A stretch of DNA of 64,000 nucleotides from Paragordius varius (Eukaryota > Animalia > Nematomorpha): NCBI GenBank assembly GCA_964247055.1, contig OZ176050.1:5704001-5768000 (forward strand), read 5' to 3'. The position numbers and the translations under genes were made by a program. The notes beneath the pieces were generated by a model. The model had not been told where the DNA came from and made no database searches. It saw only the letters and a program-made list of their open reading frames with translations. Of this stretch, positions 8,301 through 32,100 are shown in pieces (the first letter of the stretch is position 1; each line of letters opens with the position of its first letter).

Positions 8301-9062
8301 ATAATTGAATACAATATACCGTATAATAAGTGGTTTCATATCTGGTTTATATTGAGATGTTAATGATATATCAAGTATCTGAACTCCATAATTACTTATA
8401 TGAGAAAGAGGATGATCTTTGGCTTTGACTAAATTTGGGATCACATCACTTTTATGCATGACACAAAGATAAAATTTATCCACGACTATAACCCATGAAT
8501 CAGTTATGTAAAATCGCTGATTCGCAAATTGTGAATAAAACTTATCGAATACTAAGAATTCTTCGTTTAATGAATTAACTATATCTTTCCATGTGTATTG
8601 ATTTTGATCATCGACCGTATAAGATAGAGTATACGTTTTTAAATAATCAATTATAATGTGATTTTCCCAATTTAATTGATAGGAATACCAGATATATATG
8701 ATAACACCAATCGGCAATAAAAGGGATGTGCATAATATTTTGTTATAATAATTATTGATTAAATATTCTAATAATGTAAACTTTACATTATTAAAAATCA
8801 TATCTTGTGGCTGGATCCAATTATTAAGCCCGTATATAAATGCTAAATATAATTTAAAAACCATACCTGTAGGAAGAAAGGAATAAAAAAGATATAATGC
8901 ATTTATGCGTTGAATGTGATGATAAACAAAATTACATCGTTCACTAACAATGAAAATTGAAAGGATATTATCGATAACAATTCCAGAAGTAATAAATTCT
9001 TTGGGTGGGAATGTAATTAAAAATAAAAAAATTGTCCAAATTACAGCGTACAAAAATAGCAT
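5334..9062 (-). CDS. TMEM129: E3 ubiquitin ligase TMEM129 (ERAD, atypical C4C4 RING)
   Basis: Exons 9062-8867, 8842-8320, 7967-7808, 6189-5993 and 5523-5334 splice in phase. N-terminus PKEFITSGIVIDNIL...SE..FV.HHI.R, middle WKDIVNSLNEEF..FDKF...ITDSWV, C-terminus ELDNCLGC...CKMCFCRPMWCMSCMAKWFASRQD..SPETWL..KAPCPLCRSLFCLLDV all match the TMEM129 family. Confidence 0.93.
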
Positions 9063-9469
9063 GTGCTTTTAACCATACTCGTTGTGAACAGATGTATTGT
9101 GCATGTTAAATTTTTAATTTTCTGGATACCTGGACTGCCCGTAAATCGGTGCACAAAATAATCATCCTTAAGAATATATATATATATCGTGTATTTTATA
9201 TGTACTTTGTTTTTGGCCCTTTCAATTAATTTAGAAAAGATTTATTGTGGTGACGGATACACACAAAATGACAACATTTTCGCACATTTTCTAATATATT
9301 TTGGTAGCTAAATGCTGCAAAAATAATGAAATTTTTTAAAAACTACATATAAAAAGAAAAAAATATTTTATGAAGCTTTAAATTTTAGATGTAGGATCCG
9401 AAAGCCCCATTTTTTTACCCTTCAAAAATAAACTAGTATCAAAATCAGGGGATAAATAAAGATTCGCGA

Positions 9470-10045
9470 TTAACACTTGGATTCAACACATTCATTTTAG
9501 TCATCCGATTTAAAATTGGGGTAGTTGGATACCCCAGGCTTGTTTAAAATTAAATACTTTAAAAAATATTGAAGGAATCGAAACCATGGCAAAATTTTGC
9601 ATTTAAACATTAATAAACGGGAATATGAAAAAATATTTCGTAAATACTTGATATTACTTATTTAAAGCTAAAACCGAAAGGCAAAAATTTAGTCAACATT
9701 ACATGTGTGCAATGGTAAAATTGAAAAATAATACACAATAAACCGCTTTCTCTATTTTTCTTAATGTTAGATGTAATTTACATAAAAAATTAGCTTTTAT
9801 TTTACCCTTAAAATAAAGTAGATATTTTGCAAAAAATTTGTAAAATAAAAATATCGTCGAAGTAGTTTGACATGGAACTTTTTTTCAAGGCAAAATTTTA
9901 TTTAGATAGTTTGGCATATTTATATAATATTTATTAGGATAGAAACATAAATTTAAATTAAGACCGTTTTCTTCGGTAGTTTTTAAAAAATCCTAACTTA
10001 AATTTTTCGGGTATTTAGATACTCCAATTTGAATCGAAGTGTTAA
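9470..10045. mobile_element. TTAA-flanked piggyBac-like MITE (family A), full-length copy
   Basis: TTAA|CACTTGGATTCAA ... TTGAATCGAAGTG|TTAA; ~570 bp, non-coding; GGGGTA..(G)ATACCCC mini-palindromes near both ends; at least 7 further whole or partial copies in the window. Confidence 0.8.
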
Positions 10046-27949: not shown

Positions 27950-29070
27950 CAAATTTCTAAATACCCCAGACTAAATTTTAGTTAGGATTTTTAAAAACTA
28001 CTGAAGGAAACGGTGGCAATTGAACACTTCGATTCAAATTGGGGTATCTAAATACCCTTAAAATTAATATTCTTAAAAAACTACTGAAGGAAACGGTCCC
28101 AATTTAAATTTATGCTTCTATCCTGATAAATATTATATAAATATGCCAAAACACCTTGATAAAATTTGTTTTGAAAAAAAAGCTCTATCTCAAACTACTT
28201 CGACGCCATTTTTATTTTACAAAATTTTTGCAAAATATCGTCTTCATTTAATTTTACTGATTGTTTATTCAAATTACATCTAACATTGATAAAAATAGAA
28301 AAACGTATATTTTTTGAATTATTTTTTAATTTTACCAATTTACACATGTCACGTTGACGAAATTTTTACCTTTCAATTCTAGCTTAAAATAAGTAATATC
28401 AAGTATTTTTGAATAAAATTTTTTTTATATTTCGGTTTATTAATGTTAGATAAGTGCAAAATTTTGCCATGGTTTCGATTCCTTCTATATTTTTTAAAAA
28501 ATTTAGTTTTAAACAGGCCTGGGGTATCCAACTACCCCAATTTGAATCGAAGGACTAAAATAAGTGTGTTGTATCCAAAGGTTAAATTTATGCTTCTATC
28601 TAATAAAAAATATATAAATATGCCAAAATATCTAAATAAAATTTTGTTTTGAAAAAAAAGTTCCATGTCAAACTACTTCAACGCCTTAATTATTTTACAA
28701 AATTTTTCAAAATATCGTCTTCATTTATTTTTAAGGGTAAAATTAAAGCTAATTTTGTATTTAAATTACATCTAACATTAATAGAAATAGAAAAAGCGGT
28801 TTATTTTGTATTCTTTTTTACTTTTACCATTGCACACATGTCACTTGTCTAAATTTTAACCTTTCGGTTTTAGTCTAAAATAAATAATATCAAGTATTTT
28901 TGAATATTTTTTATATTTCGGTTTATTAATGTTATATAAGTGCAATATTTGCCATGGTTTCTATTCCTTCCATATCTTTTAAGGAATTTAATTTTAAACA
29001 GGCCTGGGGTAACCAACTACCCCAATTTGAATCGAAGGACTAAAATAAATGTGTTGTATCCAAGTGTTAA
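27950..29070. mobile_element. Tandem, partly duplicated family A MITE cluster upstream of SMARCC
   Basis: Partial left end at ~27950-28020, near-complete copy 28021-28585, then a second copy lacking its left end that finishes GTATCCAAGTG|TTAA at 29070, 50 nt before the SMARCC ATG. Confidence 0.75.
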
Positions 29071-29120
29071 GCCCTTTACCTAACGTTGCGACAAAGATAT
29101 TATACATTCATTTATAAATA

Positions 29121-32100
29121 ATGAACCCAGCTTCAAAATTCTTAGGTCGCTATTTCGAAGAAAATGTGATTCAACTAGAACATGTAATTAAATGGATGGA
29201 GAAGCATCATAAAAATGTTTTTATTATAATTTAAATTTAGCTTATAACTTTTGATTTGAATATCAAATATATTGTCAATTTGTTAACCAATTTCTCTATG
29301 TTTCAGGAAGATTACGTTGCACAACGTTTAGATAAATCAAATAGTTTTGTCAAAATACCTGTATTGTTTATGTGTAATTTTAGATTAATATATTTATGGA
29401 TTTAAAAATCGGAGGTTCCTTGTGTTACATAATTATGGCTATGCTTAAATATAAACATGAAAATAATATGTAAATACAAAATATATTTTTAGGCGTAAAT
29501 TTGATTTTACTTCCCCATCAAAGATAGAAGTAAACGTGGATTTGGTTAATTATATCGAAAAAATTTTGATTTCCAATAACATCCTGATCCCTCCTCGAAT
29601 ATACATCACTTCAAATGATACATCTCAAAATAACATAAAATTATTTTTTACGGATTTGGTTAAAAAAAGACACGGCGTCTTAGTCAATAATATTAATGAA
29701 GCATCTCATATCATATATTGTGAGCCTGTTGTGTCTTTACCATTTGAATCAAATATGCGGAATTCGACTCTTAATAAAGTTCTTGATGGAATTAACGAGG
29801 ACGTCGAACTAAATAATACAGACGAATCTAAAATATCAATTTTGAAAGCTAAGGGTATAACCGAAAAAGGTAAGTATTTATGTTTTGCCTATTTTTTTAT
29901 CCACTATAGTTGTTTTTAAAGCGCTCACTCATGATTGAAATATATAATATTGTTGAATTACTGCTAATTTTTTTGTAAATACATTATAGATGATGTTAGA
30001 TTTCGGATTATTGGTAAAAAGAGAAAAGAACTGCTCATACATTGGTTGCGATGTTCAGAAAGGTTAATTACGTTAAAAATTTACATATAGAATCAAATAT
30101 AATATACATATATATATATAATTGATGTGCCCAACATTATATTTATTTTTACCTTTTTTAAGATAATATTATTTATCCATTTTTTTCTTACTGTAATTTA
30201 TATCATGTATGAAGGCTTATTAAACTTTGAACGATTTTAACTCAAAAATTAGGGCTATATTTTAAATTAAGAAAATCTGTGATAACGTCCAGCATTCAGT
30301 AACTTTTATTTATTTTAAAAGCTATCGATGGGGGTGGGGGGGAATATGTTCTATAAGCTACTTGCACATATTTTTCATGATATTTTCATATTTAAATTTT
30401 TAGTTTGGATCAATGGATCCCTGATCTTGATATTGATACTGAACCCGAAAATTATGGCAAAACAGATATTAAAAAATGGCATTTATCGGCTTTGTGGTTA
30501 TTGGATTCAGACCTTGCTTGTGAATGGTTAAATGAATGGGATTATATTATTCCAAATAAGGTTTTAATTTGATTATATTATTTCAAATAAGGTTTTAATT
30601 TGATTATTCTAAATAAGGTTTTAATTTGATTATACTTTTTATTTTTAAAAATTTTACGAAATCATATTATTAATCTATAGTAAAATCATAATTATAGAGA
30701 TATCAAACATAAAAACTAAAACATATATTTTTTAATATTTTTTTAATAAAATCTTAATGATTAAAATTGGAAAATAAATAAAGTAGCGATTTACTAATGT
30801 ACATCTCTTTTTCCTTGCATTTATACCCAAAATAGGATATCACTTAATTCAAAGTTGGCTCTCCTTACAAAAAATATTTGTTTAAGTTTTCATTTCATGA
30901 TTTCAATTTTTTCTGTAAATTTAAATTTAGATGCTAAATGAAGATACGGAAGATATTGGTATTTGTAAACTGTCATACACAATATTTGATGTAAGTTATA
31001 TATAGTAATACTAATTTTTTTATGAATTAAATATGTTGTGATAACTAAAAAGTTACAGTGATTTGGCTTTTTTGAATCTATATTTGTAATTTAATTTTTT
31101 TCATATAATTTAATTAGCTGATAATATTTTACTATTTAATTATCTCTAATATTCATTTTGTCCGCAAAGTTAAATAATTTCAGATCACATATAATTGGTT
31201 TATTTTGCGTTTTTTTAGTTCAAAGGCGGAATTCATAATCCAGCAAGCTTAGCCGCTTTAACGGGCGCTGTGAATCAAATTAGAGCGGTTCGACATAAAG
31301 CGGATCATGCATTAAATACCCATTTTACCATTCCCGCTTCCCAAAACACAGAAGTGTATATTCAATCTTTGCTGGCTAATTTAACACAATCATGGATAAT
31401 ATGTAATAAAGTTAGTCAAGCTTTGACTAATAATACAAATAACTCATTTTCTGGTAATATATTATTTGGTTGTTTCCTTTAATTATATGATTATTTTTTA
31501 TATATATGACCCTTCTAATAATAAACTTTTTAAAATAAGCAACGCACTTTTCGATTTCAAATAAGATCAGGTTATAAGCGTTTAAAGTGGGAGTATACCT
31601 TCTTACCTTAATAGTTTGTCGTATTTTGTAGCCCTCATAAAGCGCCAATAAATAATTTTATTTCCACCTTACCGCGTTATTGGCAGGGGCGCGAAAACGC
31701 TTATTGTAAAGTCATTAGTTATACACAAGGGCACGTTACGTAAAAAATCGCCTTAATTATCTATGAAGTATGAATATTTTTACTCTGGAGTCCTGATTTA
31801 TACCTATCTAATATCAATTAACTTTGATGAAAAACCTTATTTTATAAGGGTGATAGGTTTATGTATCATCATTTATTTGTGTGTGGAGAGTTAATATTTT
31901 TTGTTGTATACGAAGGTATCAAAAAGGAAGCAAGCGCCTTATCATCCAATGTTGAAAAAGCCACACATATTGGCAAAAATGGTGAATCATTGATTGATAA
32001 TATGGATGAATCTTCAAAGACAACTGCTGGTTTAATCGAGTCAGATGTTTCGATTGGGAAAAGGAAAAGGTAAACTGATTATTATCAGCCATAATGTTTT

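Follow-up and report, generated by a model that had tools for sequence, protein, structure and literature searches.

The 64-kb stretch of AT-rich animal DNA analyzed here (positions 5,704,001 to 5,768,000 of contig OZ176050.1; hereafter the window) carries four genes, TMEM129, TOM7, PDHB and SMARCC, whose coding sequences (CDS) are interrupted near their 5' ends by nine segments of 22-24 nt (Table 1). An earlier note on this DNA had proposed that all nine are GT-AG introns, and a direct reading of the window sequence confirms their ends and lengths: on the strand of its gene, each segment begins with GT, ends with AG and measures 22-24 nt. We refer to these segments as micro-introns. All nine fall within the first 302 nt of CDS, and introns of 41 to 1600 nt lie further downstream in the same genes. 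The exons that separate them are also small (27, 51 and 36 nt in PDHB, 46 nt in TOM7, and 96, 120 and 86 nt in SMARCC). The 5' ends of PDHB (21533-21991) and SMARCC (29121-29869) are runs of such mini-exons and micro-introns.

Table 1. Genes of the window that contain micro-introns, and the introns considered in the text (positions are those of the window).
Feature	Position	Strand	Length (nt)	Remarks
TMEM129 gene	5337..9062	-		introns 24, ~340, ~1600, ~500 nt
TMEM129 intron 1	8843..8866	-	24	phase 1, follows codon 65; no frameshift or stop if kept
TOM7 gene	19147..19386	-		64 codons, three exons
TOM7 intron 1	19229..19250	-	22	phase 1; stop after 9 codons if kept
TOM7 intron 2	19160..19182	-	23	phase 2; weakly supported; has TAAATTTAG module
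PDHB gene	21533..25503	+		11 exons; introns 23, 23, 41, 24, 344, 727, 263, 637, 713, 111 nt
PDHB intron 1	21560..21582	+	23	phase 0, in presequence; weakly supported; has TAATTTAAG module
PDHB intron 2	21634..21656	+	23	phase 0; weakly supported
PDHB intron 3	21828..21868	+	41	missing from the list in the earlier note
PDHB intron 4	21905..21928	+	24	phase 0; TAG in frame at second codon; third PDHB intron of the earlier note
SMARCC gene	29121..40880	+		introns 1-3 micro; intron 4, 120 nt; intron 5, 339 nt; later exon gaps ~100-900 nt
SMARCC intron 1	29217..29240	+	24	phase 0; in-frame stop 5 codons in
SMARCC intron 2	29361..29383	+	23	phase 0
SMARCC intron 3	29470..29492	+	23	phase 2

Intron phases and the consequences of retention were computed from the start codons at 9062 (TMEM129, minus strand), 19386 (TOM7, minus strand), 21533 (PDHB) and 29121 (SMARCC). 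Retention of six of the nine micro-introns shifts the reading frame, and retention of two others, PDHB intron 4 and SMARCC intron 1, brings in an in-frame stop within 1-5 codons. The TMEM129 micro-intron is the only one that can be read through. The claim that eight of the nine would cause a frameshift or a stop if kept is thus correct. It had also been claimed that removing each segment restores collinearity with animal orthologues. This holds exactly for PDHB intron 4, SMARCC intron 3 and TMEM129 intron 1; the other six are consistent with it, on weaker evidence.

In PDHB, the exon at 21657-21827 aligns with residues 3-59 of the human PDHB chain and the exon at 21929-21991 with residues 72-92, and the 36-nt exon between them (21869-21904) supplies exactly the 12 missing residues (human 60-71). 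Since this 12-codon exon fills the gap, both of the introns that flank it, micro-intron 4 and the 41-nt intron 3, are validated. The downstream PDHB exons follow the order of the Pfam models Transket_pyr and Transketolase_C. At the start of the gene, removal of intron 1 fuses exons of 9 and 17 codons, which gives a 26-residue leader that is basic and free of acidic residues. In SMARCC, exon 3 aligns with residues 82-106 of human SMARCC1 and exon 4 begins at residue 109; residues 107-108 are filled by one leftover residue of exon 3 and one codon split by intron 3. The Pfam model SWIRM-assoc_2 is likewise matched at positions 76-101 and then at 104-134. Exons 1 and 2 (32 and 40 codons) together provide 72 residues for the ~75 N-terminal positions of this model that would otherwise be missing. 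In TOM7, exon 1 matches positions 9-26 of the Pfam model Tom7 and, weakly, residues 20-34 of the 55 residues of human TOM7. With both introns spliced, the product has 64 residues, including a 19-residue tail; if intron 2 is kept, 68 unrelated codons are added.

The TMEM129 segment, which preserves the reading frame, could be compared with its counterpart in Gordionus, a hairworm (Nematomorpha). The Pfam model Tmpp129 matches on either side of the segment (positions 1-51 and 71-219), and the eight residues that it would encode are missing in 15 of 15 aligned orthologues and, in a tblastn alignment, in the Gordionus protein. Exon 1 of the Gordionus gene ends at the same codon (65) and in the same phase (1), and is followed there by a 44-nt intron (positions 10197-10240 of locus L001, assembly GCA_954871325.2). 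This makes the 24-nt segment the counterpart of a bona fide intron. The second TMEM129 intron of Gordionus measures 43 nt, and the window intron at that position ~340 nt. The two Gordionus introns end in TAATTTTTAG and TAATAATTTAG, that is, in a TAAT-type element, a T-rich stretch and AG, an arrangement that resembles the 3' end of the window micro-introns described below. In other animals, open reading frame (ORF) fragments that cover exon 1 of TMEM129 lose homology at the same place, just past the LPLG motif, which suggests that the position of this intron is old. The comparison of intron positions with orthologous genes covered TMEM129, whose micro-intron shares its position with the intron in Gordionus. 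Two longer introns of the window, the last one of TMEM129 (~5505-5995, minus strand) and one in the C-terminal domain of a neighboring collagen-like gene (~4475-4709, plus strand), correspond to uninterrupted exons in Gordionus (among L001 28707-29234 and 23322-23600). These two introns have no Gordionus counterpart and thus mark a gain or a loss since the two species separated. A transposon-driven gain is not supported for either; their sequences occur once in the window.

Alignment of the nine micro-introns on their 3' ends revealed a common module. Positions -9 (T) and -8 (A) are invariant (9/9 each), A at -7 is found in 7/9, and T at -5, -4 and -3 in 9/9, 8/9 and 7/9, respectively; in all nine, the seven bases that precede AG are free of G and C. 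The other GT..AG strings of this length in the window, 634 in all, served as controls. The interior GC content is 9% in the micro-introns and 29% in these controls. The sequence TAAWTTWAG terminates six of the nine micro-introns and three of the 634 controls (p=7e-11), and the shorter TTWAG terminates eight of the nine and 52 of the 634 (p=3e-8). The position of the module relative to the 3' end is the same in introns of 22, 23 and 24 nt (n=9). The module is not needed to restore the reading frame and so constitutes independent support for the introns, including the three that are otherwise weakly supported. The 3' ends of 11 longer introns (75-727 nt) were read; none of these introns ends in TAAWTTWAG and four end in CAG, an ending that no micro-intron has. 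The 41-nt PDHB intron likewise carries T(-9)A(-8). The 5' splice sites are equally weak in micro-introns and long introns (GTW). When GT dinucleotides were counted at each distance upstream of TAAWTTWAG, we found 9 at 22-24 nt and ~1.4 per other length, a count that is circular insofar as six of the nine were the training cases.

These observations bear on whether the segments are introns at all. They could instead be chance GT..AG strings next to mis-modeled exons, insertion or deletion errors of the assembly, or sequences removed at the DNA level in the manner of internal eliminated sequences (IES). By chance, the window contains about 210 GT..AG strings of any given length, independent homology support is lacking for three or four of the nine segments, and programmed DNA elimination does occur in some nematodes. 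However, with dinucleotide frequencies of 0.043 for GT and 0.037 for AG, the joint probability of finding exact GT..AG ends at the four junctions fixed by homology is ~1e-11, and the 3' module common to all nine segments is almost missing in the 634 controls. Assembly errors would not yield AT-rich inserts of 22-24 nt bounded by GT and AG, segments eliminated in ciliates are bounded by TA rather than by GT and AG, and an orthologous intron is present in Gordionus. We therefore consider an origin of the segments in chance, error or DNA elimination to be very unlikely. With their common 3' module, the segments behave like genuine GT-AG introns of an animal genome and form a coherent class. We infer from the sequence that they are removed from the RNA, and the class is expected to occur throughout the genome.

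In the window, micro-introns are a minority class made up of the first introns of some genes. They make up nine of the 26 introns counted in their four genes. By gene, they account for three of the 10 introns of PDHB, three of the ~20 of SMARCC, one of the four of TMEM129 and both introns of TOM7. None was found among the ~7 introns of the collagen-like gene, whose eight exons are separated by gaps of ~150-430 nt. The two introns seen in an SRPK-like kinase gene (75 and 132 nt) and the intron at the Shaker junction (~243 nt) are not micro-introns either. In this one window the median intron is thus not below 30 nt. The coexistence of micro-introns and ordinary introns in the same genes, as the earlier note had it, is evident in PDHB (long introns of 111-727 nt) and in TMEM129 (~340-1600 nt). 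Its description of the long introns as filled with transposable elements (TEs) holds in part. A repeat of ~110 nt, with ~74% identity between copies, lies in two PDHB introns (intron 6, 22560-22670; intron 9, 24758-24869) and in two SMARCC introns (32134-32244 and 37171-37280) and is all that the window offers in support of this description; the large multi-copy repeats are intergenic. One repeat family, with 7-11 copies in the window (9469-10997, 20151-21484 and 27928-29070; also 47911-48333, 50829-51337 and 56815-57386), directly precedes the start codon in each of TMEM129, PDHB and SMARCC, which suggests promoter-proximal insertion or reuse of this family. In all, 19% of the window is repeated within the window. 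PDHB intron 5 contains a (TA)n microsatellite of ~27 repeats (22015-22068).

We then considered which animal the DNA represents. In an exhaustive HMMER search, the TMEM129 exon had no close relative, and its top match was Gordionus sp. m RMFG-2023. In the TMEM129 tree, the window and Gordionus sequences are sisters (41% identity; support of 99 in the SH-like approximate likelihood ratio test, SH-aLRT). The convergent pair formed by TMEM129 and the collagen-like gene is kept in Gordionus, where the collagen C-terminal domain is 65-78% identical. The GC content, ~27% throughout the window, is 27.3% at the Gordionus locus. The character of the window also matches that of the published Gordionus genome, in which GC is 26.9% and repeats, for the most part DNA transposons, take up 64% (bioRxiv 10.1101/2023.06.26.546503). 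At the DNA level, coding exons alone align between the window and Gordionus, with 68-82% identity; the two are thus different species, and to judge by this divergence they probably belong to different families. We conclude that the window most likely comes from a nematomorph other than Gordionus montsenyensis. The evidence for this assignment comes from one orthologous locus and consists of two genes, synteny and GC content. The best matches of the Shaker ORF (17035-19107) are all bilaterian, those to molluscs, annelids and a nemertean at 62-64% identity, with no cnidarian among the top 120; in the Shaker tree, the window sequence sits on a long branch within an unresolved lophotrochozoan polytomy.

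Because introns below 30 nt are already known from myxobolid Myxozoa (Thelohanellus, Myxobolus) and from Dicyemida, the window could in principle come from one of these groups. The median intron measures 22 bp in both Thelohanellus kitauei and Myxobolus rasmusseni, 27 bp in Henneguya salminicola (PMC13644364) and ~26-27 nt in Dicyema, where intron positions are conserved and 49% of the genome consists of repeats (PMC6736024, PMC6543705). Myxobolid genomes are also rich in repeats and hold long introns and micro-introns together, and H. salminicola has a GC content of 29%. Against such an origin stand the nematomorph affinity of TMEM129, with its tree support, equal GC content and conserved micro-synteny, and the exclusively bilaterian best matches of Shaker. 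In addition, Dicyema japonicum has a GC content of 36.7% and introns that average 38 bp, compared with 27% and mostly long introns in the window, and the micro size that is the median in myxobolids is that of a minority here. We give very little credence to a myxobolid or dicyemid source, and the hint at dicyemids in the earlier note was wrong: by search, tree, GC content and synteny, the nearest relative found is a nematomorph. The note also overlooked the published introns of myxobolids and the 5'-proximal placement of all nine segments. Taken together, the results make it likely that the micro-introns are U2 GT-AG spliceosomal introns of the ordinary type, shrunk to 22-24 nt, in an animal whose nearest available relative is Gordionus.

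How might such short introns be recognized? The signals would consist of a 5' site pared down to GTW and, at the 3' end, a compact module of U(-9)A(-8)A(-7), W, UUU and AG. To judge from the sequence alone, the UAA box at -9 to -7 may be the branch site. A(-7) would fit the UnAy pattern, and where T stands at -7, as in two of the introns, A(-8) could take this role. The distance from the 5' splice site to the putative branch adenosine would then be 14-17 nt, with 7-8 nt left to the 3' end, and the intron would be recognized as a unit across its own length (intron definition) and spliced by the canonical GT-AG pathway. The earlier note had envisaged two splicing regimes, one for the micro-introns and another for the long introns, or a modified spliceosome. 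The invariant UA at -9/-8 and the TAG or AAG endings do set the micro-introns apart from the 11 longer introns read, all of which lack the module and four of which end in CAG, and model spliceosomes accept distances between 5' splice site and branch point that are well above 14-17 nt. On the other hand, both classes have the same GT-AG termini and equally weak GTW 5' sites, and a fixed branch box would be forced by the lack of room in 22-24 nt and needs no new machinery. The 41-nt PDHB intron, with its T(-9)A(-8), bridges the two classes. In myxozoans with introns of 22-27 bp, U2 small nuclear RNA (snRNA) and U2AF look canonical (PMC13644364). The window itself encodes no spliceosome component; neither spliceosomal protein genes nor snRNAs were found in the 64 kb. 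A dedicated regime thus appears improbable. Canonical GT-AG splicing by intron definition would be the most economical reading, and nothing that we found demands a modified spliceosome.

Very short introns have been described in several other systems. In a survey of 51 animal genomes, introns below 30 nt were found to have arisen twice, in myxobolids and in Dicyema, and were tied to extreme reduction of genome and body (Hadjez et al. 2026, PMC13644364). Myxobolids resemble the source of the window in being parasitic animals with an AT-rich, repeat-rich genome, in GT-AG introns of 22-27 nt, in a 5' site reduced to GTa, in A residues upstream of AG, and in short introns that adjoin short introns and coexist with long ones (PMC13644364). 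They differ in belonging to Cnidaria, whereas the window most likely comes from an ecdysozoan relative of Gordionus, and in that the micro size is their median and a minority size in the window. As introns lengthen in myxobolids and Dicyema, the A residues shift away from AG (PMC13644364), while the UA(A) box of the window introns stays fixed at the 3' end; with nine introns, this contrast is only a lead. Dicyema shares with the window a bilaterian parasitic host, tiny introns and many repeats, but nearly all of its introns are tiny, and its 3' site is reported to be a bare AG where the window has the TAAWTTTAG module. Ciliate introns (~25 nt in Paramecium, 15-16 nt in Stentor) are similar in length, in their AT-rich interior, in GT-AG termini and in a branch-like A near the 3' end (PMC13644364). 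Ciliates are unicellular, however, and essentially all of their introns are tiny, with no class of long introns in the same genes. Gordionus, like the window, has a U-rich acceptor immediately before AG, and its first TMEM129 intron matches that of the window in codon and phase, but its introns of 43-44 nt are about twice as long as the window micro-introns. The short introns of nematodes, the sister phylum, of ~40-50 nt, likewise have a U-rich acceptor right before AG. We found no report of introns below 30 nt in Nematomorpha, in a literature that did not include the hairworm genome paper of Cunha et al. 2023. The word "intron" is missing from the hairworm genome preprints that were covered, and nematomorphs are not mentioned in the main text of PMC13644364. 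Introns below 30 nt in a parasitic animal are thus already known; their occurrence in Nematomorpha would be new, with moderate uncertainty about both the taxon and earlier reports.

Several observations weigh against reading the nine segments as shrunken ordinary introns of a Gordionus relative. The sample is one 64-kb window, and neither transcripts nor proteins of the species were found in the protein and contig collections: word-indexed searches with TMEM129 and Pcc1 gave no match, and the Pcc1 ORF had no exact match among the contigs. For three to five of the nine micro-introns, independent homology support is wanting, and five depend partly or wholly on ORF logic. PDHB introns 1 and 2 sit within the non-conserved mitochondrial leader, and TOM7 intron 2 is judged by protein length; these three depend on ORF logic and the shared motif. 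SMARCC exons 1 and 2, each searched alone against the PDB, gave no SMARCC match. Counts of ORF-bridging GT..AG strings per length showed no clean peak at 22-24 nt; noise and collagen repeats dominate these counts, and the test is without power. A Viterbi-style exon chainer trained on 1364 codons passed over the exons of 27-51 nt, whose coding potential is too weak in such AT-rich DNA. Neither outcome speaks for or against the introns. The micro size is absent at the orthologous TMEM129 site of Gordionus (44 nt) and so is not shown to be common to the phylum. Finally, both TMEM129 sequences are AT-biased, which may inflate their grouping in the tree.

The remainder of the window holds further genes. 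The Shaker (Kv1) ORF contains the only Rfam match of the window, the potassium-channel RNA editing signal K_chan_RES (RF00485; 18277-18390, plus strand; 84 bits, E=7e-16). A low-complexity exon of ~560 codons (15133-16815, plus strand; no Pfam match) probably lies upstream of this ORF, joined to it by the ~243-nt intron, for a product of ~1250 residues; such a length would account for the lack of a self match and of a Gordionus match in a length-filtered search. A degenerate reverse-transcriptase fragment (RVT_1; 11646-12118, minus strand) with internal stops, presumably a dead element like a long interspersed nuclear element (LINE), lies between TMEM129 and Shaker. The collagen-like gene (1017-4904, plus strand) has Gly-X-Y exons and a cysteine-rich C-terminal non-collagenous domain without a Pfam match, which by eye we take to resemble collagen IV NC1 or the spongin short-chain collagens. 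Between PDHB and SMARCC lies an apparently single-exon gene for Pcc1/LAGE3, a KEOPS subunit (26610-26849, minus strand); in the protein collections, its product had neither an exact match nor a word-sharing relative. An SLC7-type amino-acid transporter (Pfam AA_permease_2) is present as two tandem paralogues (41000-45673 and 52300-55995, both minus strand); each has a long first exon and long introns, and one intron of ~85 nt was seen in the second.

If Nematomorpha is a third independent animal lineage with introns below 30 nt, for which we see about even chances, its micro-introns would be a 5'-proximal minority whose branch box is fixed at 7-8 nt from the 3' end, in an otherwise ordinary TE-rich, long-intron genome of 200-300 Mb. 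A third origin in an ecdysozoan that is large and free-living as an adult, with a repeat-rich genome of this size, would weaken the link between tiny introns and genome compaction. The median intron of the window is long, and surveys based on the median would consequently not flag this genome; such surveys, like standard annotation, would miss nematomorph micro-introns. Introns of 23 nt and 700 nt in one gene would offer a natural comparison within a single cell, one that bears on the minimum geometry of the metazoan spliceosome. Aligners and gene finders with a minimum intron of 30-40 nt would be expected to frameshift such genes. Annotation failure might thus account for part of the "rampant loss of universal genes" reported for hairworms and of their low BUSCO scores, 71.6% for Gordionus (bioRxiv 10.1101/2023.06.26.546503), and claims of gene loss in these animals merit a recheck.

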